A DNA stretch of 64,000 bases from NCBI GenBank assembly GCA_002269645.1, contig NIVC01002312.1, positions 1 through 64,000 on the forward strand, written 5' to 3'. How positions within the stretch are numbered: the stretch's first letter is position 1; every line of letters starts with the position of its first letter. Below are positions 10,202-51,723 of the stretch, piece after piece. The notes below the pieces were generated by a model, which made no database searches, had not been told where the DNA came from, and saw nothing but the letters and a program-made list of their open reading frames with translations. Source of the DNA: Macrostomum lignano. Its lineage: Eukaryota. The position numbers and the translations under genes were made by a program.

Positions 10202-10822
10202 TCAAGCGTCCTCGGTTTCCATCGCCTCGGCATCCAGCGTCAGAGCCGCGCCGGCCTTGGCCCGCAGTTTGGCTCGCTTGGCCCTGGCCTCGGCGGCAGC
10301 CTTAGCAGTTGCCCGCTTGTCCAGCCGTTGCTGTTTAGCCGCGGCGGCGGCGGCGTCGGCTCCGGCCACCAGCCGCTTGGTGTCGGGATCGTAGATCTTC
10401 CTGGTGGCGTGCGGAGCCTGGACAAGATGCAGCTCCTGCTCCACCGACCGTACGTCGGCCAGTCGGCGCATCTCGGTGCCCTTGGCCAGGCGCTTGAGAA
10501 TATGAGACGCCTGTCGCTTCTGGCGCACTTGCACAATTTTGCGCATCGCTTCGACTGTCTGGGTCAGCGCCTCGCGGTTGTACTTTGGCAGAGTTGATCG
10601 GCGAGCCTCAAATGTCAAGCTGAGATCCTGGCTGAGGTCTTTGTTCCTAGCCATTCTGTACGCTTTAGTCCAGCGAGTCTTCCTGGGATTTCGCTTCTTT
10701 TTAAACGCTTTGTGACATTTGGAGCGGCAGAAGCGGAACTCGGTGGAGTCGTTGCGGACAAAACAGATGCCGTGGCCCGGGTAGATGTTGCTGGAGCAGA
10801 ACCAGCACTTTTGCAGGCGCAT
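10202..10822 (-). CDS. RSL24D1: Ribosome biogenesis protein RLP24 / RSL24D1 (L24e family), intronless CDS
   Basis: MRLQKCWFCSSNIYPGHGICFVRNDSTEFRFCRSKCHKAFKKKRNPRKTRWTKAYR is the RLP24 N-terminus with the TRASH zinc motif. It is a 206-aa ORF with an Ala/Lys-rich tail. Confidence 0.95.
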   Translation of the reverse strand: MRLQKCWFCSSNIYPGHGICFVRNDSTEFRFCRSKCHKAFKKKRNPRKTRWTKAYRMARNKDLSQDLSLTFEARRSTLPKYNREALTQTVEAMRKIVQVRQKRQASHILKRLAKGTEMRRLADVRSVEQELHLVQAPHATRKIYDPDTKRLVAGADAAAAAAKQQRLDKRATAKAAAEARAKRAKLRAKAGAALTLDAEAMETEDA

Positions 10823-19500: not shown

Positions 19501-22500
19501 TTAAGAAGGGATTAGGACAAGATCATGAAGGGATTAGGACAGTATCAATAGGGGATTAAGACAGGATCAATAGGAGATTACGACAGGATCAATAGGGGAT
19601 TAGGACAGGATCAATAGGGGATTAGGACAGGATCAATAGAGGATTAGGACAGGATCAATAGGAGATTAGGACAGGATCAATAGGAGATTAGGACAGGATC
19701 AATAGGGGATTAGGACAGGATCAATAGGAGATTAAGACAGGATCAATAGGGGATTAGGACAGGATCAATAGGGGATTAGGACAGGATCAATAGGAGATTA
19801 AGACAGGATCAATAGGGGATTAGGACAGGATCAATAGGAGATTAAGACAGGATCAATCGGGGATTAAGACAGGATCAATAGGGGATTAGGACAGGATCAA
19901 TCGGGGATTAGGACAGGATCAATAGGAGATTAAGACAGGATCAATCGGGGATTAAGACAGGATCAATAGGGGATTAGGACAGGATCAATAGGGGATTAGG
20001 ACAGGATCAATCGGGGATTAAGACAGGATCAATAGGGGATTAAGACAGGATCAATCGGGGATTAAGACAGGATCAATAGGGGATTAAGACAGGATCAATA
20101 GGGGATTAAGACAGGATCAATAGGGGATTAAGACAGGATCAATAGGGGATTAGGACAGGATCAATAGGGGATTAAGACAGGATCAATAGGGGATTAAGAC
20201 AGGATCAATAGGGGATTAAGACAGGATCAATAGGGGATTAAGACAGGATCAATAGGGGATTAGGACAGGATCAATAGGGGATTAGGACAGGATCAATCGG
20301 GGATTAGGACAGGATCAATAGGAGATTAAGACAGGATCAATCGGGGATTAAGACAGGATCAATAGGGGATTAGGACAGGATCAATCGGGGATTAAGACAG
20401 GATCAATAGGGGATTAGGACAGGATCAATAGGAGATTAAGACAGGATCAATAGGGGATTAAGACAGGATCAATAGGAGATTAAGACAGGATCAATCGGGG
20501 ATTAAGACAGGATCAATAGGGGATTAAGACAGGATCAATGGGGGATTAAGACAGGATCAAGAGGGATTAAGATTAGATAAAAAGAGATTAGGACATAATC
20601 AATTGGGATTAGAAGACACCTAGAGGATTAGGATCAGACATTCAGATGATTGTTCGGGACTATGCAATTAAAGTATTGTAGACAGACAGAGTACTTTAAG
20701 AATACAAAATACAATAGGCAAACCTGAGACCCGCAGTTCAGCCAGATCGAGTCGGTCACGTGACGCTGCCGCTGAGCGGGAGTTTTAGGCCGATGCGGCG
20801 GTGTCCACACAATTTCAACATTAGTTGCAATCACCATTGGCGAGCAGAATGGCAGCGGCCTAGCAACCGGTGAGCCAATCACAGCCGACGAGGCCAGCTG
20901 ATGCTGTTCGTAAGCCGCCGCAGTTGCCGCGGTCACCGGCATGAGCCCGCCGCGATCGCGCTGAAAGAAGTACAGCCTGCCAGAATAGTTCACTAGCACT
21001 GACTCCGGATGCTGCTGTCCGCCTGACTGATGACGGCTGCGACCGGCCAAGTCAGCCGAGTCAAAGGAGGCGCTGACGCCGCCGCCGCCTCCGCTAGCCG
21101 ATGGGAAAGCGCCGCCAATCTCGGAGCGCAGATTAGTTAAACAGATTTGCAATACGCAGCCGGCGTCAAGCATATAACTGGATAGGCTTAATTCTTGCAC
21201 GTGACTCAGCTTAGCCTGGCCGTCAGATTCGGACAGGGCAAACATGTCTAACTGACAGTTGGCGCTCAGCAGCACCAGCTGGTTTCCAAGGAGATTCACC
21301 AGCTGCGGTTGGCGCACGTGCTGGGCTAGCCGGTGAATGCAGGCCTGGGCATTGTCTAGGCGAGACTGCCGAGGGTACACGCGCAGCTGAGGGAATCGGA
21401 ATTGGGGCGGCTTTTGTGCTGTGCGAGAATTTCTTATTGAGTTAAGGGGGATTTGTTGTCTTTTGAGAGATGAATCTCTCATCCGTTAAAGTAGAATTTC
21501 TCATAATGAAGGGGGATTTCTCGTTTATAATAAGGGGGAATCTTTCGTTTATCCTTGTAATGAAGGGCATATCTCTCATCTATAATGAAGGGGAATTTCT
21601 CATCTTTAATGAAGGGGGAATTTCTTATCTATAATAAAGGGGGGATTTCTCATTTATACTTGTAATGAAGGGCAAATCTCTTATCTATAATAAAGGGGAA
21701 TTTCTCATCTTTAATGAAGGGGGAATTTCTCATCTATAATGAAGGGGGAATTTCTCATCTTTAATGAAGGGGGAATTTCTCATCTATAATGAAGGGGGAA
21801 TTTCTCATCTTTAATAAAGGGGGAATTTCTCATCTATAATGAAGGGGGAATTTCTCATCTTTAATGAAGGGGGAATTTCTCATCTATAATGAAGGGGGAA
21901 TTTCTCATCTTTAAAAAGAGGAATCTCTCATCTAGAATGAAGGGGTATTTCTCAGCTTTAAAAAGAGGAATATCTCATCTACAATGAGAGGGAATTTCTC
22001 ATCCTTAAAAACCGAATTTCAATTGACAATGAAAAGTAATTTCTCACCTCGGCTCGGCCGCTCTCTAAGCTAACATCGCTCATGCAGATATAGTCGGCGC
22101 CCCACCAGACTAAGCCGCCTTGCACTGTGAAGCTGCGCTCCTGCGTTTCGTTGCCAAATAATTTCCATTTTCGAGTAGCGATGGCGTAGTGCAGGAAGCC
22201 TCGGCTGCCGGCCACGGCCAGGTAACGGCCGCCTTCGTCTATGCTCACGTGCTGCGGCAGAGGGGTGCGTTGGGGGCTTAACGGTGACATGGAGGCAATC
22301 TCGCGTAATTGAGGAGCTGGGGGAGGGTTAAAGGAGGGTCGTGGGAAGGACTAGGGAGGGTCATAGGAGGGCTATTGGAAGAAAAGGGAAGGCGGCAGGG
22401 AGGGTCATTGGATGGTCAGGAGATGTTTATTGAAAGGCCAGGGGAGGATCATTGGCAGGTCAGAGAAGGATCATGAAATGTCAGGGGAGGGTCATTGGAA

Positions 22501-25500
22501 AGTCAGGGGAGGAGGGTCTTTGAAGGTCAGAGGAGGGCCGTGGAATGTCAGGAGAGGGTCAGTGGATGGTCAGGGGAGGAGGGTCATTAGAAGGTCAGGG
22601 GAGGAGTCGGAGGACAAGGATCCATTTAAAAGGCAGTAAGGTCCCGCATATGCCGGTGACACTCGCAACACACTGAAACTCACCCGTATAGGCCAGTGAG
22701 CGGCAGTATACAGGGCCGGCAGGCAGGCAGTGTGCCAGTTTTTACTGCCGCCGTAGAGCTGAGCGGGCTCAGCGCCGCTAGTATGAGGATGATGCGGCGA
22801 TAGGAACACCCGATCGGGGCCGCACTGCACAATATGCCGCAGATTGCCCTGGCAAGGATTATCAACTAATCCGGACTTGACAAAGCTATACAGAGACAGG
22901 CCGCCTCGTTCGGTGATGGTAGCCATGAGGTAGCCGCTGCAGCACCAGCAGGCGTCGATAAGGCCCGCTGCTGGCGAGGCCGGAGCCGGAATGGACAGCA
23001 GCAGGAAGCCGCCAGCTGTCCAGAGGGCGATGTGTCCCCTGTCCCACAGGCCTAGCAGAACCGCACAGTCTGGAGTCCATCTCAGAGCCAATAGCTGGGT
23101 CTGTTGGCCAGCTGCCAGACCCAGCCCCGGCGGATGGTGCTTCGGCGTCAGGCGGAACCGATTGCTCATTGCGAATGCGCCAGTATCGTCGTCGGCGGTG
23201 AATATGACGACGTCGGTGCCGCGGCCTCCGAATGCAACGGTTCGATATTTATTATTGACCGACATGCAGGTGGCGTACTTCAGATTCTCGGCTAGGATGC
23301 CTTCGACCAGCTGGATTTTAAATATTAGATATTTTAGTGTGTTGTGCTTCATATCAATTGTGTCTCTTCATATGCATGCAATGTCTTTTTAATGTAGCTT
23401 TTGTCTCTGTCTCATGTAGCCTTGTGACTGTCTGCCGCTTTCTACTTGCATCATTGTCTTGTTCCTGTGTCTAGCTTGTGCTTTTCATGTGTCCGTCCGT
23501 ATCTTAGTGTGTCTAACAATGTATCTGCCAGTATCTTGATGTGTCTGCCAGTATTTTTGTGTCTGCCAGTATCTTGATGTGTCTGTCAGTATCTTTATGT
23601 GTCTGCCAGTATCTTGATGTGTCTGCCAGTATCTTTGTGTCTGTCAATATTTTTATGTGTCTGTCAGTATCTTTATGTGTCTGCCAGTATCTTTGTGTCT
23701 GCCAGTATCTCAATGTGTCTGTCAGTATCTTCATGTGTCTGCCAGTATCTTGATGTGTCTGCCAGTATCTTCATTTGTCTACCCGTATCTTCATGTGTCT
23801 ACTAGCATCTTGATGTGTCTGTCAGTATCTTTATGTCTGCCAGTATCCCGATGTGTCTGTCAGTGTCTTCATGTGACTGTCAGTATCTTTATGTGTCTGT
23901 CAGCATCTTGATGTGTCTGCCAGTATCTTCATGTGTCTGTCAGTATCTTAATGTGTCTGCCAGTATCTCAATGTGTCTGTCAGTATCTTGTTGTGTCTGC
24001 CAGTATCTTAATGTGTCTGCCAGTATCTTAATGTGTCTGTCAGTATCTTTATGTGTCTGCCCGTATCTTTATGTGTCTGCCAGAATATTTATGTGTCTGC
24101 CAGTATCTTGATGTATCTGTCAGTATCTTGATGTGTCTGCCAGTATCTTAATGTGTCTGTCAGTATCTTGATGTGTCTGCCAGTATCTCAATGTGTCTGT
24201 CAGTATCTTGATGTGTCTGCCAGTATCTTAATGTGTCTGCCAGTATCTTAATGTGTCTGCCCGTATCTTAATGTGTCTGTCAGTATCTTGATGTGTCTGC
24301 CAGTATCTTTATGTGTCTGCCAGCATATTTATGTGTCTGCCAGTATCTTGATGTGTCTGCCAGTATCTTCATGTGTCTGTCAGTATCCCGATGTGTCTGT
24401 CAGTATCTTGATGTGTCTGCCAGTATCTTCATGTGTCTACCCATATCTTCATGTGTCTACTAGCATCTTGATGTGTCTGTCAGTATCTTGATGTGCCTGC
24501 CAGTATCTTCATACGTCCTACTAGAACAGAAAGAACATAAAATGAATAATACCGAACTGAACGCGCACCTTCTGGTCCAGCTTAGTAGCCGAGTTAGTAG
24601 CCAGCAGGGCAGCCTTGCCATTGGACAGCAGCAGCACGAAAACGCCTAAACTTGGACTGAACTCCAAGTGGCGACAGTGCAGGCCCTCCTCGGCGAGTCT
24701 AGTTGCTCTTGAATGCTCCAGATCGTAGAAAAACGTCACCTGACGCAGATCTACAGACTGATGTTGATTCTGTTGCTGCTGCTGATTCTGCTTTTCGCTA
24801 ACAATGACAGACTGCGAGGCGCCGCCATTCCAGCGCAACCGACGAATTAGGCCATCTTTAGTAGCCACAATCAGGTCGTCTTTGAAGTGGCACATTGACG
24901 TCACCTGACTGCCCAGGTGGATTGCGTCAGACAGGCGAAGCGAAACCAGAGGCTGACGGCCGGGAGCCGACTTGCCTGTTCGACCCTGCCGGCTGGAGCG
25001 ATCAGTTGGAGTGGGAGATATACGATCGGGGCAGATAGACAGAATCGGGAGCGGATAGCCGGAGGATCAGAGGGCGGATAGCCGGAGGATCGGGGGCGGA
25101 TAGCCGGAGGATCAGAGGGCGGATAGCCGGAGGATCGGGGAGCGGATAGCCGGAGGATCAGAGGGCGGATAGCCGGAGGATCGGGGGCGGATAGCCGGAG
25201 GATCAGAGAGCGGATAGCCGGAGGATCAGAGGGCGGATAGCCGGAGGATCGGGGAGCGGATAGCGGGAGGATCAGAGGGCGGATAGCCGGAGGATCGGGG
25301 GCGGATAGCCGGAGGATCGGGGGCGGATAGCCGGAGGATCGGGGGCGGATAGCCGGAGGATCGGGGAGCGGATAGCCGGAGGATCAGAGGGCGGATAGCC
25401 GGAGGATCGGGGTGGAAAGCCGGATCGGGGGTAGATAGCTGGAGGCGGATAGCAGGCCGATCGGGGGCGGATAGCCGGAGGATCGGGGAGCGGATAGCCG

Positions 25501-35260: not shown

Positions 35261-35299
35261 ATCGCTTCTCGGCCTTATTGGCTAAGATCAAAGTGTAGT
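35261..35299 (+). ncRNA. U2: U2 snRNA gene, 5' half (nt 1-39), interrupted by a retrotransposon
   Basis: ATCGCTTCTCGGCCTTATTGGCTAAGATCAAAGTGTAGT is the U2 5' end (stem I plus the branch-point recognition GTGTAGT). Retroelement sequence follows immediately. Confidence 0.95.
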
Positions 35300-35302
35300 T
35301 TG

Positions 35303-36551
35303 ACGACTGGACGGCCAGCCTGGAGTGGCGCGACCCGCTGTCCGGAACTATCCAGCGCTGTGACAGAGCGGCAGCAATCACCCGGAGGCTTCACCAGGTG
35401 GTCAGGGCAGCGCACACGGCGGCCTGGCGCGGGTGCCACTCCCAGGGCCGATTCGCCACGACTGCCACGCACATCGGCAGCCACACCTGGCTGTTCAGCA
35501 GCACCGGCATGCGCGCCTGCGACTGGCGCTTCATCCACCGAGCGCGGCTCAACCTGGTGCCCACCAACGCACTCCGGAGACTGGCCGACCCGACATCCGA
35601 CCCGCGATGCCGCCGCTGCGGAGCCGGCGTCGAGACGCTCGGCCACGTGATCAACAGCTGCCCGGTGCACGCGGCCAGGTGGAGGGACCGCCACGACGGC
35701 ATCGTCAACGCCGTCGCCACCGCCATCAGCGAGGCCCGCCCAAACGCGACCATCACCACCGACCAGGAGGTCCTTCCCGGCTCTGATCTGCGACCTGACA
35801 TCAGCATCATGGATCCAGACAGAGGCCGCCGTCTCCTGATCGAAGTCAAGTCGCCGTTCGAGGTCGGGCCGGCCACGTTCCCACGCAAGCACCGAGCCGT
35901 ATGCCAGAAGTACGCCGGCATCACGCAGCAGCTCAGCGCAGAGGCACCAACGGCCCTGGCGACTTTCTGCATCGGCTCGCTGGGTGCCTGGTCGCCCTTC
36001 AACAACGCCATCCTGCGCGCTGCAGGCCTGCGCGAGCGCGACATCCGGCACCTCCAACGACGACTGGCGCTGCACTGCATCCACTGGAGCCGCAACACGT
36101 GGGTGGAGCACTGCACCGGCGCACCTCAAATCCACTGATTTAGTGCCGAACTCTGCCAAACTCTGCTCATCTCAGCCCACCCTGTTACCTTTACTTTTAC
36201 CTGTTTTATTTATCTTCCACTCTGCATTTTTGTTTTACTTTGTTTTTCTTTAATATTTTACTTTTTACTGTCTCGAAGTTCATGCACTCTGTTAGCTATT
36301 CTCGCTGCGATTCCGCCTCTCGCGCTCATCCCTGCCACCATCCCGTCTCCTGCGCCTTCACTTTTTCCCACTGTTTTAATTGCATTTATTTCATTGTTTT
36401 ACTGTTTTACGCATCCTGCGAACCTGTTTTTAGCTACTCTCAGTAGCATCATCGGCTCTTGGCCAAATATTTCCGCTTATATCGCATCGTTTAAATACTT
36501 AAATATATTGCCCGACCGTCGGATACTCGTCCGAGGGGCAGGGCCTTTCGC
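35303..36551 (+). mobile_element. 5'-truncated RLE non-LTR retrotransposon (Utopia-like, subfamily A) inside U2
   Basis: ORF to 36138 has the CCHC knuckle CRRCGAGVETLGHVINSC, RHDGIV, and PD...EVK restriction-like endonuclease motifs. A T-rich 3' UTR follows, and the 3' end abuts U2 nt 41. Confidence 0.92.
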
Positions 36552-36702
36552 TCTGTTCTTTAGAGATTAATTCCTCTAACGTAGGCCATTGGTCTACTAA
36601 GTAATTAATCCGGTTTTTGATGAGTCGGACCAGTGCTTCGTGTTCACACGACCTGATCCACGCGTAGGCCTTGCGCTGCAGTACAGCAAGGATCTGCGCA
36701 TC
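36552..36702 (+). ncRNA. U2: U2 snRNA 3' half (nt ~41 to end), copy 1
   Basis: TCTGTTCTT; stem IIa TAGAG-ATTAATTC-CTCTA; IIb GTAGGCC-ATT-GGTCTAC; Sm site GGTTTTTG; stem III; stem IV with loop GCTGCAGTAC. With the 5' half it totals ~191 nt. Confidence 0.92.
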
Positions 36703-36749
36703 TAAGAAATCTAAAATAGCGAAGGCGGAGTCATGGCAGTATCAAGGAG

Positions 36750-38961
36750 TGCGCGCTGCAGGCCTGCGCGAGCGCGACATCCGGCACCTCCAACGACGAC
36801 TGGCGCTGCACTGCATCCACTGGAGCCGCAACACGTGGGTGGAGCACTGCACCGGCGCACCTCAAATCCACTGATTTTGTGCCGAACTCTGCCAAACTCT
36901 GCTCATTTGCCATGAGCATTTGTCATTTGCCAAACTCTGGCCCACCCTGTTACCTTTACTTTTACCTGTTTTTTTATCTTCCACTCTGCATTTTTGTTTT
37001 ACTTTGTTTTTCTTTAATATTTTACTTTTTTACTGTCTCGAAGTTCATGCACTCTGTAAGCATTTTTCGCTGTGATTCCGCCTCTCGCGCTCATCCCCGC
37101 CGCCATCCCGTCTCCTGCGCCTTCACTTTTTCTCACTGTTTTAATTGCTTACTCCAATGTTTTACTGTTTTACGCATCCTGCGAACCCGTTTTTAGCTAC
37201 TTCGAGCGCGCACGTCAAATCCTCCGCCGCATCGTCTACCTTCCGACGCAGTCCTCGACAGACTACCTCTACGCCGACAGATGCCACGGCGGCCTTGGCC
37301 TGTCCCTAGCGAAGGAGGAGGCAGCCGTCCAGAAGGTCACCGAGGCCATCAGGCGACTCTGCTGCACCGACGCCGCGCTCAGAGAGCTAGCCTGGGCCGA
37401 ACTGCGCGGCCTGGTCCAACGCCGCCTACGGCTCCGGGCTGCACCTGTTTGACCTCGCGACGTCGCCGACTTCCTCAATGGCGCAGCACTGCCACCCAGC
37501 GGAGAAACGGCCAGCTGGTGGTTCCAAGTCCGCCACGCCACCCGCGAGGTGCTCCACGCGACCGGGCTGCGCTTCACCATCAGCAACGACTGGACGGCCA
37601 GCCTGGAGTGGCGCTGCAACCGCTCGACCGCTCGAGAAGTGCTGCAACCGCTCGACCTGAAGTTCCGCATTGAGCAGGACTGGACTGTGCGTCTGGAGTG
37701 GCGGCACCCGCTGTCTGGGGCGGTCGAGCAGCTCCAACGGATCAGCGCGGCCACGCGCAAGCTGCACGAGGTCGTCAGATCGGCGCACACATCGGCGTGG
37801 CGGCAATGCCGCTCCCAGGGCCGCTTCGCGACGACGGCGACACACATCGGCGGGCACACCTGGCTGTTCAACAGCACCGGGATGCGCGTGTGTGACTGGC
37901 GCTTCGTACATCGCGCCCGCCTCAACCTCATTCCAACGAATGCGACGCGGCGGCTCGCTGACCCGACAGCCGACGCCCGCTGCAGGCGATGCGGCGCTGA
38001 GGCGGAGACCCTCGGTCATGTCCTTAGCGCCTGCCCTGTGCATGCGGGACGATGGAGAGACCGCCACGACGGCGTCGTCAGCGCGATCGCCGGTGCCATC
38101 CAGAAGGCCTGTCCGACTGCGACGGTGCTCAACGATCAGGAGGTGCTGCCTGGTTCTGGCCTCCGTCCCGACATCAGCGTCGAGGACCCGGCTCGAGGAC
38201 GGCGCCTGCTGATCGAAGTCAAGACACCGATGGAGGCCGGCCCGACTACCTATTCGCGTAAGCACCGGGCCGTCTGCGAGAAATACGCTGGCCTGACCCA
38301 GCGGCTGAAGGAGGACGCACCTACGGCCCTGGCGACTCTTTGTGTCGGAGCGCTTGGCTCCTGGTCGCCGCACAACAACACCATCCTGCGTGCGGCCGGG
38401 CTCGCCGAGCGCGTCATTCGCAGCCTCCAGCGCCAGCTTGCGCTCCACTGCATCCACTGGAGCCGCAATTCGTGGGTGGAGCACTGCACGGGCGCCCCGC
38501 AAGCTTTCTGATGCACCTGTGCCTGTGCCTTCGCCTGACCGTTTTGGGTCTCCGCGCTTTCTGACCCCAATTATTGCCCGTTGCTCCTTTTGGGACGTCC
38601 GCGCCTGTTTTCACCACCTTTATATCTCATTTATCTATTTTGCATTTAATACTCTCTCACCCATCCTTTTTTTATCCATTTTGGTCTATTTTATTTTATT
38701 TCTTTTTTATTTCATCCTTTTGTTTTCGTCTGCTTTTACTGCCACTCCCCTTTTTATCCCGCTTCCCGTTGTCTTCTAAAAGTCTTTTGAAACGCTTTAT
38801 TCTGCTCAATTTGCTTTAACTTTCGCCGCTCTATTTCTTTTGCATGAGCCCTCGCTCGCCGTCGCCTTTACAATCATCTGTCCTCGCCTACTAATTTCCT
38901 TTAATACTTAAATATATTGCCCCCACTCTCGGTAGCTCGTCCGAGGGGCAGGGCCTTTCGC
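36750..38961 (+). mobile_element. Chimeric retroelement segment: subfamily A 3' fragment, then A internal fragment, then subfamily B RLE domain and 3' UTR
   Basis: 36750-37197 re-enters the A 3' end (..CTGAPQIH*). 37200-37610 is A post-RT sequence. ~37615-38511 is a diverged RLE ORF (CRRCGAEAETLGHVLSAC, RHDGVV, PD..EVK, ..CTGAPQAF*) with a different 3' UTR. Confidence 0.88.
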
Positions 38962-39112
38962 TCTGTTCTTTAGAGATTAATTCCTCTAACGTAGGCCATT
39001 GGTCTACTAAGTAATTAATCCGGTTTTTGATGAGTCGGACCAGTGCTTCGTGTTCACACGACCTGATCCACGCGTAGGCCTTGCGCTGCAGTACAGCAAG
39101 GATCTGCGCATC
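38962..39112 (+). ncRNA. U2: U2 snRNA 3' half, copy 2
   Basis: Identical by eye to 36552-36702 (offset 2410). Confidence 0.92.
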
Positions 39113-39159
39113 TAAGAAATCTAAAATAGCGAAGGCGGAGTCATGGCAGTATCAAGGAG

Positions 39160-41182
39160 TGCGCGCTGCAGGCCTGCGCGAGCGCGACATCCGGCACCTC
39201 CAACGACGACTGGCGCTGCACTGCATCCACTGGAGCCGCAACACGTGGGTGGAGCACTGCACCGGCGCACCTCAAATCCACTGATTTTGTGCCGAACTCT
39301 GCCAAACTCTGCTCATTTGCCATGAGCATTTGTCATTTGCCAAACTCTGGCCCACCCTGTTACCTTTACTTTTACCTGTTTTTTTATCTTCCACTCTGCA
39401 TTTTTGTTTTACTTTGTTTTTCTTTAATATTTTACTTTTTTACTGTCTCGAAGTTCATGCACTCTGTAAGCATTTTTCGCTGTGATTCCGCCTCTCGCGC
39501 TCATCCCCGCCGCCATCCCGTCTCCTGCGCCTTCACTTTTTCTCACTGTTTTAATTGCATTTACTCCAATGTTTTACTGTTTTACGCATCCTGCGAACCC
39601 GTTTTTAGCTACTTCGAGCGCGCACGTCAAATCCTCCGCCGCATCGTCTACCTTCCGACGCAGTCCTCGACAGACTACCTCTACGCCGACAGATGCCACG
39701 GCGGCCTTGGCCTGTCCCTAGCGAAGGAGGAGGCAGCCGTCCAGAAGGTCACCGAGGCCATCAGGCGACTCTGCTGCACCGACGCCGCGCTCAGAGAGCT
39801 AGCCTGGGCCGAACTGCGCGGCCTGGTCCAACGCCGCCTACGGCTCCGGGCTGCACCTGTTTGACCTCGCGACGTCGCCGACTTCCTCAATGGCGCAGCA
39901 CTGCCACCCAGCGGAGAAACGGCCAGCTGGTGGTTCCAAGTCCGCCACGCCACCCGCGAGGTGCTCCACGCGACCGGGCTGCGCTTCACCATCAGCAACG
40001 ACTGGACGGCCAGCCTGGAGTGGCGCGACCCGCTGTCCAGAACTATCCAGCGCTGTGACAGAGCGGCAGCAATCACCCGGAGGCTTCACCAGGTGGTCAG
40101 GGCAGCGCACACGGCGGCCTGGCGCGGGTGCCACTCCCAAGGCCGATTCGCCACGACTGGCGCTTCATCCACCGAGCGCGGCTCAACCTGGTGCCCACCA
40201 ACGCGCTCCGGAGACTGGCCGACCCGACATCCGACCCGCGATGCCGCCGCTGCGGAGCCGGCGTCGAGACGCTCGGCCACGTGATCAACAGCTGCCGGTG
40301 CACGCGGCCAGGTGGAGGGACCGCCACGACGGCATCGTCAACGCCGTCGCCACCGCCATCAGCGAGGCCCGCCCAAACGCGACCATCACCACGACCAGGA
40401 GGTCCTTCCCGCTCTGATCTGCGACCTGACATCAGCATCATGGATCCAGACAGAGGCCGCCGTCTCCTGATCGAAGTCAAGTCGCCGTTCGAGGTCGGGC
40501 CGGCCACGTTCCCACGCAAGCACCGAGCCGTATGCCAGAAGTACGCCGGCATCACGCAGCAGCTCAGCGCAGAGGCGCCAACGGCCCTGGCGACTTTCTG
40601 CATCGGCTCGCTGGGCGCCTGGTCGCCCTTCAACAACGCCATCCTGCGCGCTGCAGGCCTGCGCGAGCGCGACATCCGGCACCTCCAACGACGACTAGCG
40701 CTGCACTGCATCCACTGGAGCCGCAACACGTGGGTGGAGCACTGCACCGGCGCACCTCAAATCCACTGATTTTGTGCCGAACTCTGCCAAACTCTGCTCA
40801 TCTCAGTCCGCTCTGTTACCTTTACGACTTTACCTGTTTTATTCATCTTTCACTCTGCATTTTTGTTTTACTTTGTTTTTCTGTAATATTTTACTTTTTA
40901 CTATCTCGTAGTACACGCACTCTGTAAGCTATTTCGCTGCGATTCCGCCTCTCGCGCTCATCCCTGCCGCCATCCCATCTCCTGCGCCATCACTTTTCCC
41001 CACTGTTTTAATTGCATTTCATTGTTTTACTGTTTTACGCATCCGCGAACCCGTTTTTAGCTACTCTCAGTAGCATCATCAGGCTCTTGGCCAAATATTT
41101 CTGCTTATATCGCTTATTGTGTTTAATACTTAAATATATTGCCCGACCGTCGGATACTCGGCCGACGGGCAGGGCCTTTCGC
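39160..41182 (+). mobile_element. Chimeric/deleted subfamily A retroelement segment
   Basis: 39113-40020 duplicates 36703-37610, then continues as A with small deletions and frameshifts to the stop at 40769, followed by the 3' UTR. Confidence 0.88.
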
Positions 41183-41333
41183 TCTGTTCTTTAGAGATTA
41201 ATTCCTCTAACGTAGGCCATTGGTCTACTAAGTAATTAATCTGGTTTTTGATGAGTCGGACCAGTGCTTCGTGTTCACACGACCTGGTCCACGCGTAGGC
41301 CTTGCGCTGCAGTACAGCAAGGATCTGCGCATC
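41183..41333 (+). ncRNA. U2: U2 snRNA 3' half, copy 3 (variant)
   Basis: Same as copies 1 and 2 except AATCTGG and GACCTGGTCC, the latter perfecting stem III pairing with GGACCAG. The downstream flank continues ...AAGGAGTACTGTAC. Confidence 0.92.
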
Positions 41334-41902
41334 TAAGAAATCTAAAATAGCGAAGGCGGAGTCATGGCAGTATCAAGGAGTACTGTACATGTATATAGCT
41401 ATGTACGGTGGTCCTTTGGGTGGTAGGAAGAACGTAGAATACCGACGTCAGATGCAAAACTGACGCGGCCGACCTCCCTGTGCCTTCGCCTGGTCGCCCG
41501 CGGTATCCACGCGCCCTTCTCTCTCGTTGCCATTTGCTTCCCCTTTGACTTTTGCTCCTGTTTTCACCCGTCTACATCTTATACATTTTACATTTTATGT
41601 ATCTATTTATCATTTATTTCATCCTCCTTTACCTTTTTAATCATTTCGACTCACTTTTCTATTCTATCCTTTCGTTTTCGCTCTTATCTTACTTCTACTC
41701 TCTCGTTTTTATCCCCAGATATTCTTTTTCCTCTAAAATCTTTTTGAAATGCGCTCCCGCCTTCTTTTTTGCTTCAAATTGCTTTAACAATCGCCGCCCC
41801 CGTGCGACACCGTGACGTCGCCGACTTCCTGAATGGCGCGACGCTACCATCAAGCGGCGGGACATCCAGCTAGTGGTTTCAAGTGCGCCACGCCGTCCGA
41901 GA

Positions 41903-41927
41903 GGCCTTATTGGCTAAGATCTGTAGT
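41903..41927 (+). ncRNA. U2: U2 5' remnant (nt ~11-39, lacking AAAG) at the 5' junction of the near-full-length element
   Basis: GGCCTTATTGGCTAAGATC-TGTAGT versus GGCCTTATTGGCTAAGATCAAAGTGTAGT at 35271-35299. Confidence 0.8.
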
Positions 41928-44900
41928 TCGGCTCGGCTCGGTTCGGCTCGTCATGCTTCGCCTCGGGTGCTCCACTTCACAGTAACATCGCCGTCTCGGC
42001 CTTTGGATCCACTGCTCGACTATAGTGGCGGAATATGTACACATGCAAGTGCGGCCGTCAATTTAGGTCCGAGCGCAACCTTTACGCCCATGCCGGCATC
42101 TGCAAGAACTCGGCTACCTCGCCCAGCGGCAGCAGCCTCGATCGACCCCAACAGCGTCGAATCAAGCGACTGAGGCAGCGGCTACCAGCAGCAGACGACA
42201 GTCTGGAGCAGCGCTGCCGAGGGAGGTTTGCCCGGCCTGCCGTAAGACACTGACAGCCAAAGGCATGTCTCGGCACTTAAACACCTGCGCAGAGAGGCAA
42301 CGCGCGGCCGGTAACTACGAGGCTGCGGCCAAGGCAAAAGCAGCAACGGACGCGCGGCATCGGTGCACGTACAGATGCGGCGCACAATTCACCACAGCAC
42401 GCGCCCGCAACATCCACGCCGCCAGGTGCAGACCAAGGACTGACGCCAAGCTGGAGAACGCAGTCGCATGCCGGCACTGCCACACGATTTTCTCCACTGC
42501 TAGGTGGGCACGCCACGCGGCCCTCTGCGCCACGAGACGGGGCGCCACGGCACCAGCAGTCGAACCAGCGGCACCGGCAGCCGTAGCGGCGCCAGCAGCT
42601 CCGGTGGTGACGTCGGCGGCACCAGCAGTTCCCGCGGCTCCAGTAGCATCAGTGGTGGAGACAGCAGCAGCACCGGCAGCAGCGGCAGCGGCGACAGCAG
42701 CAGCACCGGCGGCAGCAGCACCGGCGGCAGCGGCAACGGCGACAGCAGCAGCACCGGCGGCAGCAGCACCGGCAGAAGCAGCAGCGGCGACAGCAGCAAC
42801 AGCGGCGGCAGCAGCACCGGCGGCAGCGGCAGCGGCGACAGCAGCAGCTCCGGCGGCAGCAGCACCGGCGGCAGCGGCAGCGGCGACAGCAGCAGCTCCG
42901 GCGGCAGCAGCATCGGCGGCGGCTCCAGCGGCAACGGCGGCTCCAGCAGCACCCGCGGCTTTGGCTCCAGAAGCGCCAACCACAACCGCGGCGGCAGCAT
43001 GCCTCCAAGCGATCGCCAACCTACCAGAGGACGACGCAACAGCATGGCCAGAGTTCTGCACCGCCTGCGACAGCTTCATCATCGCCGCACAGCCCGAGAA
43101 CAACCGCAGAGGGAGGGGCGGACCAAGGCACAACGACAACCTTGCCGCACGGTACGCGAGAAACCGTCGCGAAGCCATGCGCGAGACCCTAGGCGAAGCC
43201 CGAGTCGAATGCGCGGTCCCCCTCGCTGACGTCGAAGCCGAATTTCGCCGGAGGTACGCCGACAGAGGACCCCGCGACTGGGACAGTGATGCGGCATACA
43301 TCCCAAAGGCGACCACCGCAGACCTCAGCACAGCGGAAACGATAACGGCAGCGGACGTACGGCGCGCCCTCAAGGGTCGGACGGACTCTGCGCCCGGCAA
43401 CGACGGCCTACGGTACTCCGACCTGACCAAGGCCGACCCGTCCGGACAAGCACTGGCCGCAATCTTCGACCTCTGCCTGCGCCGATTCCACCGCGTCCCG
43501 CCCAGCTGGAAGAGCTACCGCACCATCCTGCTGTTCAAGAAGCCGGACCGGTACATCGCCGCCCAAGAATCCGACCTGTCCAAATGGACACGTGCTACAA
43601 GATCCTGGCAGCCATCCTGGCGGAGCGGGTCACGCGGTGGGCGTCCGACGCCGACCTGATCAGCCCAGAACAACGTGGCGGACTCCAGTACGAAGGCTGC
43701 GCCGACCACAATTATGTTCTGAGAGCTTGCCACGACGACGCGCGCCGCCGCAAAGCTGTCCTCGACGCCGCCTTCGTGGACCTCCGCGACGCCTTCACAA
43801 GCGTCCTGCATGACCTCATGTTCGGCCAGCTCGAGCGAGGCGGCCTAGACGCAGTCACACAGGCCCTCATCCAAGACATCTACGCCGACAACGTTACTGC
43901 GGTGTACACCGGCCCTGATCAGGCGACTGCCGACATCCCCGTTGAGAGCGGTGTTCGGCAAGGTTGCCCGCTGTCCCGCTACCTTCCGACGCGGTCGTCG
44001 ACAGACTACCTCTACGCCGACAGATGCCACCGCGGCCTTGGCCTGTCCCTAGCGAAGGAGGAGGCAGCCGTCCAGAAGGTCACCGACGCCGCGCTCAGAG
44101 AGCTAGCCTGGGCCGAACTGCGCGGCCTGGTCCAACGCCGCCTACGGCTCCGGGCTGCACCTGTTTGACCTCGCGACGTCGCCGACTTCCTCAATGGCGC
44201 AGCACTGCCACCCAGCGGAGAAACGGCCAGCTGGTGGTTCCAAGTCCGCCACGCCACCCGCGAGGTGCTCCACGCGACCGGGCTGCGCTTCACCATCAGC
44301 AACGACTGGACGGCCAGCCTGGAGTGGCGCGACCCGCTGTCCGGAACTATCCAGCGATGCGACAGAGCGGCAGCAATCACCCGGAGGCTTCACCAGGTGG
44401 TCAGGGCAGCGCACACGGCGGCCTGGCGCGGGTGCCACTCCCAAGGCCGATTCGCCACGACTGCCACGCACATCGGCAGCCACACCTGGCTGTTCAGCAG
44501 CACCGGCATGCGCGCCTGCGACTGGCGCTTCATCCACCGAGCGCGGCTCAACCTGGTGCCCACCAACGCGCTCCGGAGACTGGCCGACCCGACATCCGAC
44601 CCGCGATGCCGCCGCTGCGGAGCCGGCGTCGAGACGCTCGGCCACGTCATCAACAGCTGCCTGGTGCACGCGGCCAGGTGGAGGGACCGCCACGACGGCA
44701 TCGTCAACGCCGTCGCCACCGCCATCAGCGAGGCCCGCCCAAACGCGACCATCACCAACGACCAGGAGGTCCTTCCCAGCTCTGATCTGCGACCTGACAT
44801 CAGCATCATGGATCCAGACAGAGGCCGCCGCCTCCTGATCGAAGTCAAGTCGCCGTTCGAGGTCGGGCCGGCCACGTTCCCACGCAAGCACCGAGCCATA

Positions 44901-45240
44901 TGCCAGAAGTACGCCGGCATCACGCAGCAGCTCAGCGCAGAGGCACCAACGGCCCTGGCGACTTTCTGCATCGGCTCGCTGGGCGCCTGGTCGCCCTTCA
45001 ACAACGCCATCCTGCGCGCTGCAGGCCTGCGCGAGCGCGACATCCGGCACCTCCAACGACGACTAGCGCTGCACTGCATCCACTGGAGCCGCAACACGTG
45101 GGTGGAGCACTGCACCGGCGCACCTCAAATCCACTGATTTTGTGCCGAACTCTGCCAAACTCTGCTCATCTCAGCCCACCCTGTTACCTTTACTTTTACC
45201 TCTTTTACTTATCTTCCACTCTGCATTTTGTTTAACTTGT
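41928..45240 (+). mobile_element. Near-full-length Utopia-like non-LTR retrotransposon (zinc fingers, Ala/Pro linker, RT, RLE), frameshifted and internally deleted
   Basis: ATG 42035. Four C-C-H-C fingers: CKC..H..C; CPAC..RHLNTC; CTYRC..H..C; CRHC..H..C. RT motifs include APGNDG, YKILAAIL, VDLRDAF and GVRQGCPLS. The sequence jumps at ~43975 straight to post-RT sequence with no YADD motif. The RLE ORF ends at 45137. Confidence 0.92.
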
Positions 45241-48200
45241 TGTCTCCTGCCTGCCCTTCCATCTCAGACTACGCGACGCCGATTGAACGCTACTGGGCAA
45301 TCAGCGGTGCAAGTTGCAAGAACGGCAGCGTGCGGAGCTGGGCTTTGATGAGAGGGCCCACCTACCACCTGCCAGCAGAGTCGACGATTGACTACCTTTA
45401 CGCCGACAAGCGTCACAGTGGTCTCGGACTGCCCCTGCTTAAAGAAGAAGCCGCCATTCAGAAGGTTGTCGAGGCGCTAATGCGTCTTGGAAGCAGCGAT
45501 GAGATCTTGCGCGACATTGCCTGGACGGAGCTACAAGATTTGGTTCGTCGTCGGCTTTGATGAGTCGTCGGCAGCCGGCTTGACGCCAGCCGAACTCTGC
45601 TGCGCTGCCCTCAACGACCTGCCTGAGGACGACGAGCGAGCATGGCCTGAGTTTTGCACGGCCTGCGACTCCCTCGTTGCCACCGCTATCCCGGATGAGC
45701 GCCGCGGTTGTGGAGGGCCTCACGGACGGTGTGGTTCTCCCAATACCAGTCTGGCGGCTCGCTACGCAAAAAAATCGAAAGCGCGCGATGCGGAACATTG
45801 CGCATTGAATGCACTGTGCCCATTGCGGACATCGACACCGACTTTCGACAACGCTATGCAGATCGTGGGCTACAAGACTGCCCGACCGCCCACCGGCCCG
45901 CTCCTGCTTGCCGCGACACCTTTACGGCGGAGCCAATTACTCCAGCAGATGTCAACCTGAAAACGGTACCGCACGGTGTTACTATTCAAAAAGCCGGACA
46001 GGTATGAGGCCGGGCAGGAATCTGACCTATCCAAATGGCGCCCAATAACTCTGCTGGACACCATCAATAAAATCTTTGCGGCGGTTCTAATCGAGCGTGT
46101 TCTACAATGGGCGACTTTGGCGGAGCTCATCAGCCCGAGGCAGCGCGGAGGCCTCCACTATGAAGGTTTTGCCGACCACAACTACGTGCTGCGCGCCTGC
46201 CGCGACGACGCATGACGCCGCAAGGTGACGCTGGACGCTGCCTTCCTAGACCTCCGTGACGCCTTCACCAGCGTGACTCACGACCTGCTATTTGGATCCC
46301 TGGAGCGGGCGGAAATGGACGGAGACACCTTAGCGCTCTTTGGGACATTTCCGCGGAGAACGTGACCGCTATCCATGCCGGCGAAGACCGCGTCATCCCC
46401 GATATTCCGGTTGAAAGCGGAGTGCGCCAGGGCTGCCCCCTCTCGGGAGTCCTTTTCGCGTTATGCATGGAGCCCCTCCTTCGTGCGCCGGATCCTGTCG
46501 ACGGCTACCTACTGCATGGACACCATCAGCTCAACCTTGCGTACGCTGATGACGCGGCGTTCGTCACGAGCAGCGGGGCCGCTCTTCGGCGCGTGGTCGC
46601 GGCGATTGACAAGGCAGCAGACTGGGCAGGCCTCACCATCAACCCGGGCAAGTGCGGCCGCCTTACCATCAACGGCGGCCCGGCCGAGGAGGCGGATCTA
46701 CAGGTCGCTGCGGGCCCCATCCGGAACCTTACCGAGGACGAGACCTACGAGTACCTGGGCGTCCCGGCAGGTGAACGACGTTCTGCGTCTGTTGGCGCCT
46801 TACTCGAGCGGGCGCTCCGAGAGCTCACAGCGGTGGCGAACTGTGACCTCCTGCAATGGCAAAAGCTGAACGCTTACCGCACCTTTGTGGTCTCCCGCCT
46901 GCCTTTTCATTTCAGGCTACGCGACGCCGACTGGACGCTGCTGGGCAACCAGCGACGCAAGTTGCAAGGCCGACAGCGCGTGGAGTAGGGCTATGACGAG
47001 AGGGCACGCCAGATCATCCGGCGCGTCGCCTACCTGTCAGCGGAGTCGACGGTCGACTACCTTTACGCCGACAAGCTCCATGGTGGCCTTGGGCTGCCGC
47101 TGCTCAAAGAGAAAGCCGCCATCCAGAAGGCAGCGACGAGATACTGCGCGACATTGCCTCGACCGAGCTACCGTGACGTCACCGACTTCCTGAATGGCGC
47201 GACGCTACCACCAAGCGGTGAGACATCCATCTGGTGGTTTCAAGTGCGCCACGCTGTCCGAGAGGTCCTGCAGCCGCTCGACCTGAAGCTCCCCATCGAA
47301 CAAGACTGGACTCTGCGTCTGGAGTGGCGGCACCCGCTGTCTGGGGCGGTCGAGCAGCTCCACCGGATCAGCGCGGCTACGTGCAAGCTGCACGAGGTTG
47401 TCCGATCGGCGCACACGGCCGCATGGCGCCAATGCCGCTCCAAGGGCTGCTTCGCGACGACGGTGATGCACATCGACCGACACACTTGGCTGTTCAATAG
47501 CACCGGGATGCGCGTATGTGATTGGCGCTTTGTACAACGAACCCGCCTCAACCTCATTCCGAAAAATGCGATGCGGCGGCTTGCTGACCCGACAGCCGAC
47601 GCCCGCTGCAGGCGATGCGGCACGGAGTCGGAGACTCTCGGCCACGTCCTTGGCGCCTGTCGTGTGCACCACGGAGGGATCACCACGTCGGCGTCGTCAG
47701 CGCGATCGCGGGCGCCATTCAAAAGGCGTGCGTGACTGCGACGTTGCTCAGCGACCAAGATGTGCTGCTGGCTCTGGCCTACGTCCCAAAATCAGCATGG
47801 ATGACCCGGCCCGAAGACGGCACATGCTGATCGAACTCAAAACACGGAGACCGGCCCGGCTACCTACTCGCGAAAATACCGCGCCATCTCGAGAATTACG
47901 CTTGCCGCAGACACACCTACGGCCCTTACATTTGCTGCGTCTGTGTCTTGTGATGTCCTTGTCTTCCCCGCTGGCCGCGGAGGCGCAGGACACGAACGAG
48001 GTTGTCTGGCTGGGCGGGCGGCGTATCTTCGGAAGGTCTGTGCTTGTGCGGACCATTGGTCGTTCCCATTTAAGGCCTGAGTCCAGGGGCCCCCGGGGCT
48101 CTGACTGGTTGCTCATGTCAGTGGGAGTCCCTTCTTGGAGGGTGTGTGTCGTGCGCTTGGCTCTTTGTCACCGCACAACAACACTATCCTGCGTGCTGCC

Positions 48201-48340
48201 GGGCTCGCCGAGAGCGTCATCCGCAGCCTTCAGCGTCAGCTTGCGCTCCATTGCATCCACTGGAGCCGCAATACGTGGGTGAGAGCACTGTACGGGTGCA
48301 CCGCAAACTTTCTTACGCACCCGACCTTCCTACGCCTTCG
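45240..48340 (+). mobile_element. Older, degraded RLE retroelement copy and shards (subfamily B/C-like)
   Basis: Fragmented frames retain PITLLDTINKIF, GVRQGCPLSGVLF, LAYADD, GLTINPGKC, YEYLGV, CRRCGTESETLGHVLGAC and HCIHWSRNTWV, with many frameshifts and stops. Confidence 0.88.
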
Positions 48341-48409
48341 GCTGGTCGCCCGCAGTCTCCAAGCTTGGTGTGAAACGAGGGTAGGAAGCAGTGCTGTGTG
48401 CTGCCCGCG

Positions 48410-49320
48410 AATCAGCCCGGGGAGGGGCTCTGCCGCTGGATTACAGGGGCCCATCTACCAGGGGCATAAAGCCCGAGCGGCCCAGGTTGAGACCAGGACT
48501 CATGGCCTGGAAAAACATCTTAATTGGTGCTACTAGCCCAAGCCTATGGACTAAGACACCGCCAACCCATAGTGGAATCAGGGACGGTGCTAGGACCGAG
48601 TCCACTCAAGCCATCCCCCCCCCCAACGACAAAACCCAAGTGTGCGCGCAAAAATTTTCCCAAATTTTGGAAAAGCGGTCCGAGAGTGGGGAAAACCCCG
48701 AAGTCTACGGAAAAGGCTTTAGATTGGAGCGAATCTGCGCAGCTTATTTACCAAGGGCGAGTCTCCTATCAGAAGGCCGAATTGCACAAAGCTCCTCCTA
48801 TGGGGCTGCGAGCCTCAAGGCTTTTTCACTAACCAGCTCTAAACAATTGGAGAATGCTTAAGCGGTCCGAGAGAGGAAATATCCTAGTCTACGGAAAAGG
48901 CTTATCTATTGGAGCGAGTCGGGAAGATTATTGCGATGGGCGAGTCTCCTATCAGGCAGGTGACCAAAACTACCTATAGGGCTGCGAGCCTCAAGGCTTT
49001 TTCGCTATCCAGCTCAGTATAAAGGCCAGGCCAAGGGGTTGGAGAGGGGCACAAGGAGCAAGAGGAACCCGGACTCAGCCGGACGAACTCTTCCCCGGGA
49101 CTCTAGTCCACTGTCAGAGATGAGAGCCAAGACACAAAGGCAGGGAACTTCCAGAAGAGACAGCAGGTGGACCGAGGCTGTGGAGCGCGCTCACCGAGGC
49201 GAGACCTTCAACTCCGAATTTTGGGTGGCTCCAGTGACAAGATAAAACCAAGGGCTAAAACATGGGGAGATAAAGCTGGGGAGGATCACACAACCTCAGG
49301 GGCTCAGCCTCGGGGCTGGC
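48410..49320. repeat. ~0.9-kb interspersed direct repeat, copy A (with two internal ~185-bp subunits)
   Basis: Colinear with 50790-51723, sharing blocks such as CAAGCCTATGGACTAAGACACCGCCAACCCA and GCAAGAGGAACCCGGACTCAGCC. Confidence 0.85.
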
Positions 49321-50710: not shown

Positions 50711-50789
50711 CAGAATACTCTACAGGTAAAAACAGTCAGATACCGTCTTTGTTGTTGTTAATCGAGGGTGGGAAGCCAGGGGCCCCGCG

Positions 50790-51723
50790 GATCAGCCCAA
50801 GTAGGGCTCTGCCGCTGGGATCTACCAGTGGGCCATACTGCCAGGGGCATATAGCCCGAGAGGCCACGATTGGGACCAGGGCCTAAAGGCCTGGACATAC
50901 CTAATTGGGGCTACTAGCTCAAGCCTATGGACTAAGACACCGCCAACCCAAGGTGGAATCAGGGACGGTGCTAAGACCGAGTCCACCCAAGCCACCCCCC
51001 AACGACAAGACCCGGGAGTGCGCGCAAAAAGATTGGAGTTTAGAAAGCGCGGTCCGAGAGTGGGGAAACCCCAAAGTCTACGGAAGTAGTGCTTTAGATT
51101 GGAGAGTCTGGGCAGCTTATTTACTAAGGCCGAAGCTCCTATCAAGAGTAGATTATTGCAAGACCTCCTATAGGGCTGCGAACCACAAGGCTTTTTCACT
51201 ACCCAGCTTTAAACAGTATTGGAGTATTTAAGCGGTCCGAGAGAGGAAATATCCTAAGTCTGTGGAATAGGGCTTATCTATTGGAGCGAGTCTAGAAGCT
51301 TATTGCCAAGGGCGAGTCTCCTGTCAAGCAGGAAGACCGTCTACCTACAGGGCTGCGAGCCTCAAGGCTTTTTCGCTATCCAGCTCAATAAGGGCCAGGC
51401 CAAGGGGTCGGAGAGGGGCACCAGGGGCAAGAGGAACCCGGACTCAGCCGGTATTCCCCGATTCGGGACGAACTTATTCCCCAGGACTCCAATCCAACTG
51501 TCAGTGATGAGAGCCAAGACACAATAAGCAGGGAGACTACCAGAGGAGCCAGCAGATGGACCAAGGCAAGCAAGATGAACCAGGCAGGGAGGGCAGAGCT
51601 CATTACTCCAAAGATTGGATGGCTTCGAGGCCGGGGATAAAAGCACAAAGCTAAAACACAAAGGAATAAAAAATGGGAGGAGCACCTGCTGAACCCTCAA
51701 CCTGGGGCTCAGACTCAGGGCTG
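50790..51723. repeat. ~0.9-kb interspersed direct repeat, copy B
   Basis: Diverged copy of 48410-49320 with the same two-subunit structure. Confidence 0.85.

Follow-up and report, generated by a model that had tools for sequence, protein, structure and literature searches.

Which element has split a gene for U2, a small nuclear RNA (snRNA), of the flatworm Macrostomum lignano at positions 35261-36706, and did it land there by chance or as a specialist of this site? The window analyzed here comprises positions 1-64,000 of contig NIVC01002312.1 (GCA_002269645.1, Mlig_3_7), i.e. the first 64 kb of the contig, and all counts of M. lignano elements and junctions refer to this single window. We find a decayed U2 cluster that was very probably colonized by F1 and F2, two subfamilies of a U2-site-specific retrotransposon without long terminal repeats (non-LTR) and encoding a restriction-like endonuclease (RLE), of the kind known as Utopia. 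Utopia elements are NeSL-clade, RLE-encoding non-LTR retrotransposons whose 3' ends are followed by U2 sequence from nucleotide (nt) 39 onwards (PMC4640811). The M. lignano copies show a precise 3' junction, a fixed 5' U2 end with one base lost, 5' truncation with filler bases, no poly(A) and a conserved 3' terminus (Table 1).

The two halves of the split gene were scored separately against the Rfam U2 model (RF00004) in truncated mode. The 5' part, ATCGCTTCTCGGCCTTATTGGCTAAGATCAAAGTGTAGT, is 39 nt long, occurs once in the window (0 expected by chance) and is preceded by native, AT-rich DNA. On its own it aligns to model positions 1-40 as a 3'-truncated match (33.1 bits, E 4.8e-6), with real identity to the consensus stopping at model position 37. 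On the far side of the element, U2 resumes from 36552 with TCTGTTCTTTAGAG..., opening TCTGTTCTT, and this 3' part alone aligns to model positions 39-192 as a 5'-truncated match (89.9 bits, E 4e-19). The sole U2 position missing from the two halves is canonical position 38, the final A of the branch-point-pairing GUAGUA. An earlier note on this DNA had described just such a U2 gene, split by a 5'-truncated RLE element with about three untemplated nucleotides, no target-site duplication (TSD) and only A40 missing, and had proposed a comparison with the U2 covariance model. This description holds in each of these points: both halves match the model, direct reading of the junctions gave no TSD at the split, and the A40 of the note is the same base as canonical A38, because the M. 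lignano 5' part contains two extra nucleotides (UUAUUGG, CAAAG). The filler TTG is unlike both the U2 continuation (ATC) and the element sequence found upstream of this point in longer copies (..ATCAGCA, then ACGACTGG).

The inserted element (35303-36551) consists of GC-rich coding-like sequence and then a T-rich untranslated stretch that runs to ...GGGCAGGGCCTTTCGC at 36551 without poly(A). Its open reading frame (ORF) remnant (35398-36138, 246 amino acids (aa)) carries a CCHC motif and RPD...EVK, and the copy is 98% identical to 44302-45238, the 3' part of the longer copy 41928-45238. While the account of the split copy stands, the earlier note missed that U2 3' parts occur three times at this locus, that a further, partial 5' part is present and that the copies fall into two subfamilies.

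Element copies and subfamilies were delimited by self-comparison of the window. F1 comprises 35303-36551, 39614-41182 and 41928-45238; F2 comprises 37615-38961 and ~45560-48345, plus fragments in 41460-41904. The two subfamilies share ~70-75% nucleotide identity and 69% aa identity over the nuclease region, and all of their copies in the window are degenerate. Three 3' junctions of the form ...GGGCAGGGCCTTTCGC/TCTGTTCTT are present (36551/2, 38961/2 and 41182/3), two of F1 and one of F2, so that 3/3 intact element 3' ends sit in U2, at nt 39. Both 5' junctions (35299 and 41927) stop at U2 nt 37 (...GTAGT) and differ in structure.

These junctions bear directly on whether a non-specific RLE retrotransposon could have hit U2 once by chance, with local tandem duplication supplying the repeated junctions. 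Duplication itself is certain, since the left part (100% identity) and the joint between flank and element are the same in units 36750-39159 and 39160-41383, which implies at least one tandem duplication after insertion. Yet F1 and F2, ~25-30% apart in nucleotide and 31% in aa sequence, join U2 at the same base, and the shared site therefore does not go back to one duplicated event. The two structurally different 5' junctions further speak against a single hit, as do the relatives on five unrelated contigs that use the same site (see below) and the self-comparison, in which all element-related sequence of the 64 kb falls between 35303 and ~48345, inside the U2 cluster. We consider a chance insertion extremely improbable and retain the reading of a site-specific element.

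Three U2 3' parts (beginning at 36552, 38962 and 41183) are accompanied by only one full 5' part; the 36-mer opening TCTGTTCTT... occurs three times in the window and the 39-mer of the 5' part once. Behind the first 3' part, the native downstream flank is cut ~47 bp past the U2 end given in the earlier note, and the same flank/element joint recurs at 39159/39160. In the F1 block that follows the first flank, an RLE end with partial 3' untranslated region (UTR) (36750-37203) precedes a reverse transcriptase (RT) thumb/linker segment (37204-37614). An ORF (37549-38511) runs across the joint to the adjacent F2 copy, which shares 84-86% identity with the long F2 copy (45560-48345) and 72-75% with F1. 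Repeat families D6, D11 and D14 cover the duplicated 39160-39860 block, with D14 being 100% identical over 300 nt. The F1 copy at 39614-41182 carries internal deletions and frameshifts, with 93.6% (39648-40159) and 97.4% (40154-40873) identity to the F1 reference. Behind the third U2 3' part, more of the native flank is preserved, to ~41459. The second 5' fragment (41903-41927) represents U2 nt 12-37 as 19 + 6 exactly matching nucleotides around a 4-nt AAAG deletion, ends in GTAGT, and is directly abutted by the 5' UTR of the only F1 copy whose 5' end is complete. All copies in the window have lost function, the U2 genes being inactivated and the elements dead.

As the U2 3' part and the same 47-bp flank are repeated and directly followed by more element sequence, the U2 sequence might alternatively have been carried along by the element, in read-through or 3' transduction that extends as far as the U2 3' box, and would then be no mark of the target. 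A U2 co-transcript is plausible for such elements. In the first copy, however, the matching U2 5' part is present and preceded by native AT-rich DNA, which means that the gene was simply split; the third retains the longer native flank; in two relatives, L089 and L090, a U2 gene is split in the same manner; and duplication of DNA accounts better for the identical joint of flank and element. Transduction is thus very improbable as the source of the U2 3' parts, and we continue with U2 as the insertion target.

The same junctions create a pitfall for annotation. At the gathering threshold, an Rfam scan of the window reported three U2 matches (36526-36706, 38936-39116 and 41157-41337), each covering model positions 1-192 at 78-84 bits. 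These seemingly complete U2 calls consist of the last 26 nt of the element, forced into the stem-loop I region, plus U2 nt 39-192. We considered whether the element 3' end mimics U2 stem-loop I and rejected this idea: the U2 3' part gains in score when searched by itself (89.9 versus 78.5 bits), and the alignment of the element end is therefore a forced one. Automatic annotation would list three intact U2 genes at this locus, although each of them is a 5'-truncated pseudogene.

The 3' UTRs of F1 and F2 are mostly unalignable except for a terminal block of ~55 nt (AATACTTAAATATATTGCCC...GGGCAGGGCCTTTCGC). A hairpin is predicted for this terminus in each of the three copies (z -1.9 to -2.7), and a double change from G-C to C-G between 41123-41182 (F1) and 38902-38961 (F2) is suggestive of covariation in the predicted stem.

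Conceptual translation yields a single ORF with zinc fingers, an Ala-rich repeat, RT, linker, CCHC and a PD..ExK endonuclease. In the F1 copy 41928-45238 the ORF starts at 42035 and begins with four zinc-finger-like motifs (C-x(1-3)-C-x12-H-x3-C, CCHC/C2H2-like; 42035-42520), a region that gives weak Pfam zf-C2H2/C2HC matches. Between these motifs and the RT lies an Ala-rich low-complexity stretch (42544-43014) with a 9/15-nt periodicity, known from F1 only, as the homologous F2 region was not recovered. The RT corresponds to Pfam RVT_1, and the element ORFs otherwise give only zf-RVT in Pfam. Within the window, YADD is present solely in the RT of the F2 copy (46362-46988). The C-terminal motifs, CRRCG..ETLGHV..C..H (CCHC) and then RPD..EVK, are conserved in alignment A1, which comprises the element protein and the three relatives closest to it. 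The F1 copy whose 5' end is complete retains an RLE ORF (44265-45137) and is broken by frameshifts near 42230 and 43600, a stop at 44166, a truncated 3' UTR and a deletion that begins just behind GVRQGCPLS and takes away the RT up to the thumb; in the long F2 copy, stops and frameshifts are combined with the loss of both ends. No Myb, apurinic/apyrimidinic-like endonuclease (APE; Exo_endo_phos), RNase H or peptidase domain was found on the element ORFs (Pfam, E<=0.1). We also considered whether the 5' end carries a ribozyme, hepatitis delta virus (HDV)-like or otherwise, or some other known RNA, and rejected this: 41380-42400 gave no credible match, and the 5' UTR folds no better than shuffled sequence (z = +2.2).

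These features can be compared with those of described elements. Utopia elements have variable 5' junctions and, in arthropod families, no TSD (Kojima & Jurka 2015, PMC4640811), and their proteins carry one to three zinc fingers at the N-terminus as well as an RT and a further zinc finger with the RLE (PMC4640811). Oomycete arrays hold several families and have lost the U2 5' part, and Nasonia copies can be tandem (PMC4640811). The M. lignano element agrees in its 3' junction, where U2 resumes identically at nt 39 (TCTGTTCT...), in a variable 5' junction that has a small deletion and, like the arthropod families, lacks a TSD, and in a single ORF with N-terminal zinc fingers, RT and CCHC plus RLE, without Myb or APE; the absence of Myb separates Utopia from R2 according to a 2026 study, which also added sponges as hosts (PMC13188248). 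Further points of agreement are the presence of several families in one U2 array, with tandem and 5'-truncated copies, and disrupted U2 copies that locally outnumber intact ones. The element differs in having four zinc-finger-like motifs rather than one to three, and in the Ala-rich repeat linker. It also differs in its host: the published list names Amoebozoa, oomycetes, arthropods, nematodes, chordates and echinoderms, and flatworms are not on it (PMC4640811). None of the papers searched linked Macrostomum with Utopia, NeSL or U2 snRNA. The suggestion of the earlier note that this is a Utopia-like family, possibly in an apparently flatworm lineage without prior description, is supported by the 3' junction at U2 nt 39, the very junction by which Utopia is defined (PMC4640811), and agrees with M. 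lignano as host and with the absence of Platyhelminthes from that list.

Other systems resemble the element less closely. Keno, of the Tx1 clade, shares the U2 3' flank with Utopia and acquired the site convergently (PMC4640811); it has an APE, whereas the M. lignano element lacks one and carries a C-terminal RLE instead. R2 (9nl3, 9dou, 8gh6) has the same overall architecture, and profile A1 aligns to the RT and nuclease domain of the solved R2 proteins with 350 bits, the linker being alignable as well. Presumed target-primed reverse transcription (TPRT), a structured 3' UTR and the lack of poly(A) are also common to both. R2 differs in targeting 28S rather than U2, in its Myb domain, not found here, and in sequence (21.5% identity); the Rfam scan detected no rRNA in the 64-kb window. 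NeSL-1 and the planarian R5/LIN elements belong to the same broad clade, and a presumably NeSL-like Caenorhabditis protein (P0163) is among the top matches. Here, in contrast to NeSL-1, no Ulp1-like protease domain was detected and the target is U2, not SL1; R5/LIN differs in targeting 28S or tRNA genes.

Next, we placed the element among its relatives. Word-indexed protein searches gave four full-length relatives, and an exhaustive profile search gave >11,000 matches below 1e-30; the ten nearest relatives are all metagenomic. A scan of metagenome loci returned mostly RT-only matches to other long interspersed elements (LINEs), with full-length matches only in L006 and L007. Relatives were labelled both by their source names and by direct reading of their own flanking DNA. 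The sequence TCTGTTCT..., which begins at U2 nt 39, directly follows the 3' UTR in L005 (P0140), L006, L088 (P0237), L089 (P0233 cluster) and L090 (P0282), with Rfam U2 matches on L088 and L089. The earlier note had looked to RT clustering with non-U2 clades and to random flanks as signs against its view; these five relatives were found in U2. L089 (380-410, 4301-4346) and L090 (91-127, 3930-3960) are metagenomic contigs, one of them from TARA, with complete insertions between both U2 halves. Their upstream U2 5' part ends at nt 28 and nt 36, respectively, and TCTGTTCTT stands downstream, which corresponds to 5' junction types with target deletions of 10 bp and ~2 bp. The U2 of L090 carries the GATCAAAGTGTAG variant, the same as in M. 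lignano U2.

A neighbor-joining (NJ) tree was calculated from 60 sequences and 681 columns with 200 bootstraps, using one solved R2 (sequence from the PDB alignment) as outgroup. An oomycete clade (100%), which unites P0140 with Aphanomyces and Globisporangium proteins, and an animal clade with L006, Centruroides and Plectus (99%) are both U2-flanked. Cherax and Araneus are likewise found in clades other than that of P0140, as is Caenorhabditis, represented by P0163, which we take to be NeSL-like from its host, its length of 2,256 aa and its 100% clade. A further clade (100%), which holds the three protein relatives nearest to the element, has a different target: L002 (P0002), L086 (P0157) and L087 (P0001 cluster, P0001/P0305) are RLE retrotransposons at one fixed site in 5S rDNA, where the 5' part ends ...GTTAGC, followed by the element, and the 3' part begins TTGGATGGGTGACCGCC (TTGGATGGGTGACCGCCTGGGAA). 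For an RLE-type 5S-specific element we found no description in the literature; the 5S-specific element Mutsu is of the APE type. Identity to the M. lignano element is 34-36% in the 5S clade, 32-33% for P0237/P0233, 25-31% for the rest and lowest for the solved R2, the most distant sequence compared. By sequence comparison, the element is best placed inside the NeSL/Utopia radiation, in a neighborhood dominated by U2-inserting elements.

Could the element instead represent a platyhelminth LIN/R5 branch, or another non-Utopia RLE lineage, that independently gained its target at U2 nt 38/39? It would then act in the manner of Utopia without descending from that lineage. In the same clade, the LIN/R5 elements of planarians have diversified their targets to 28S rRNA, tRNA-Arg and tRNA-Glu genes (PMC4640811), Keno illustrates convergent acquisition of the same U2 site, and the M. 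lignano element, again different from described Utopia, lies outside both well-supported U2-flanked clades. Its nearest clade, a weakly supported sister, targets 5S rDNA, which indicates that target switching occurs nearby. The next-nearest P0237/P0233 as well as P0282, however, are inserted at the same U2 site, and with U2-inserted neighbors a retained ancestral U2 target is the simpler reading compared to an independent gain, which we regard as unlikely. More tentatively, the element and its metagenomic relatives may together form a deep, undescribed NeSL/Utopia branch in which the target has switched between U2 nt 38/39 and the fixed 5S site; we see this as less likely than not. If true, the sister clade of P0001, P0002 and P0157 would be a group of RLE-type, 5S-rDNA-specific retrotransposons of which no description was found, and the two would form a natural pair for studying the re-targeting of RLE LINEs, with one member in a transgenesis-capable model flatworm.

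Several points weigh against a U2-specific element of the Utopia kind. In the NJ tree, the M. lignano element joins the 5S clade at 48% and then the U2-flanked P0233/P0237 at 33%, and this placement comes from a tree whose references are relatives labelled by source name or flanks, with one R2. The identical left boundary of units 2 and 3 means that there were possibly only two independent 3' insertion events, and the target preference of the 3' end is read in one 64-kb window of the M. lignano genome, in which no element copy is intact. Since this window holds no intact M. lignano U2, the lost A38 is assigned from the universal GUAGUA and its loss is in this sense assumed. The hairpin covariation is based on three sequences, and the Rfam scan gave no credible match to a known ribozyme at the 5' end of the F1 copy (41380-42400).

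By analogy with R2 and Utopia, the insertions could have arisen as follows. The nuclease would nick the U2 gene between nt 38 and 39, on its antisense strand, and the freed 3'-OH would prime reverse transcription from the conserved ~55-nt 3' terminus. A second-strand cut one base upstream would lead to the loss of A38, and incomplete synthesis of complementary DNA (cDNA) would leave 5'-truncated copies with filler bases such as TTG. The out-of-order fragments probably stem from template switches while cDNA was being made, or else from recombination at a later time. The unit of element fragments, U2 3' part and 47-bp flank would then have been duplicated, either by unequal crossing-over or by gene conversion. 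Given that the U2 5' part immediately precedes full-length copies, the U2 promoter is the most likely start of transcription.

Table 1: Features of the U2 cluster in the M. lignano window and 5S rDNA flanks of related elements
Feature	Position	Strand	Basis
U2 snRNA gene 5' part, canonical nt 1-37	35261-35299	+	unique exact match; RF00004
TTG filler at the 5' junction	35300-35302	+	direct reading versus F1 at 44290-44310
F1 element, 5'-truncated: linker + CCHC + RLE ORF remnant, 3' UTR	35303-36551	+	self-comparison, ORFs
U2 3' part no. 1, canonical nt 39-192	36552-36706	+	RF00004, junction reading
Native U2 downstream flank, then next element fragment	36707-36749	+	alignment A3
Two F1 fragments, out of order	36750-37614	+	self-comparison
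F2 element, 5'-truncated: linker + CCHC + RLE, 3' UTR (38512-38961)	37615-38961	+	self-comparison, ORF
U2 3' part no. 2, joined to F2 3' end at TCTGTTCTT	38962-39116	+	Rfam, junction reading
Repeated F1 fragment block (39160-39613), then 5'-truncated F1 copy	39160-41182	+	self-comparison, ORFs
U2 3' part no. 3, joined to F1 3' end	41183-41337	+	RF00004, 83.9 bits (gathering-threshold scan)
F2-type fragments, non-collinear: 3' UTR (41460-41808), then ORF (41809-41904)	41460-41904	+	repeat D12, 93%
Second U2 5' fragment, GGCCTTATTGGCTAAGATC/TGTAGT	41903-41927	+	direct reading versus 35261-35299
F1 copy, complete 5' end, 3' UTR cut at 45238	41928-45238	+	self-comparison, ORFs, Pfam
Divergent RT-thumb fragment (45237-45560), then F2 copy, both ends truncated (~45560-48345)	45237-48345	+	self-comparison, ORFs, Pfam
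5S flanks, L002	40-112, 4270-4330		
5S flanks, L086	1-52, 4100-4150		
5S flanks, L087	3440-3490		

Outside the cluster, the window contains a host gene for the ribosome biogenesis protein RLP24 (10202-10822, minus strand), whose best named relatives are from neodermatan flatworms (~57% identity). Long minus-strand ORFs at 13584-14906, 17567-18205, 20634-21482 and 22570-23352 resemble exons of one or more host genes, and a simple-sequence repeat at 933-1583 reads through as an ORF (LSIY repeats). A repeat pair unrelated to the U2 element (48365-48700 and 50752-51072) is 80% identical; as its first copy adjoins the lost 3' end of the long F2 copy, this other repeat may have interrupted the F2 copy near 48365.

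Overall, the element adds a member to Utopia, a kind already described and very widespread, rather than being a new kind, in a phylum for which no description was found. The range of Utopia would thereby gain a phylum, the Platyhelminthes, represented by the basal Macrostomorpha. Two diverged subfamilies coexist in one low-copy U2 cluster, the same puzzle that has been raised for oomycetes. Tools for gene insertion are being sought among site-specific RLE retrotransposons, and since M. lignano is transformable, an intact copy, if present elsewhere in its genome, could be studied in vivo.

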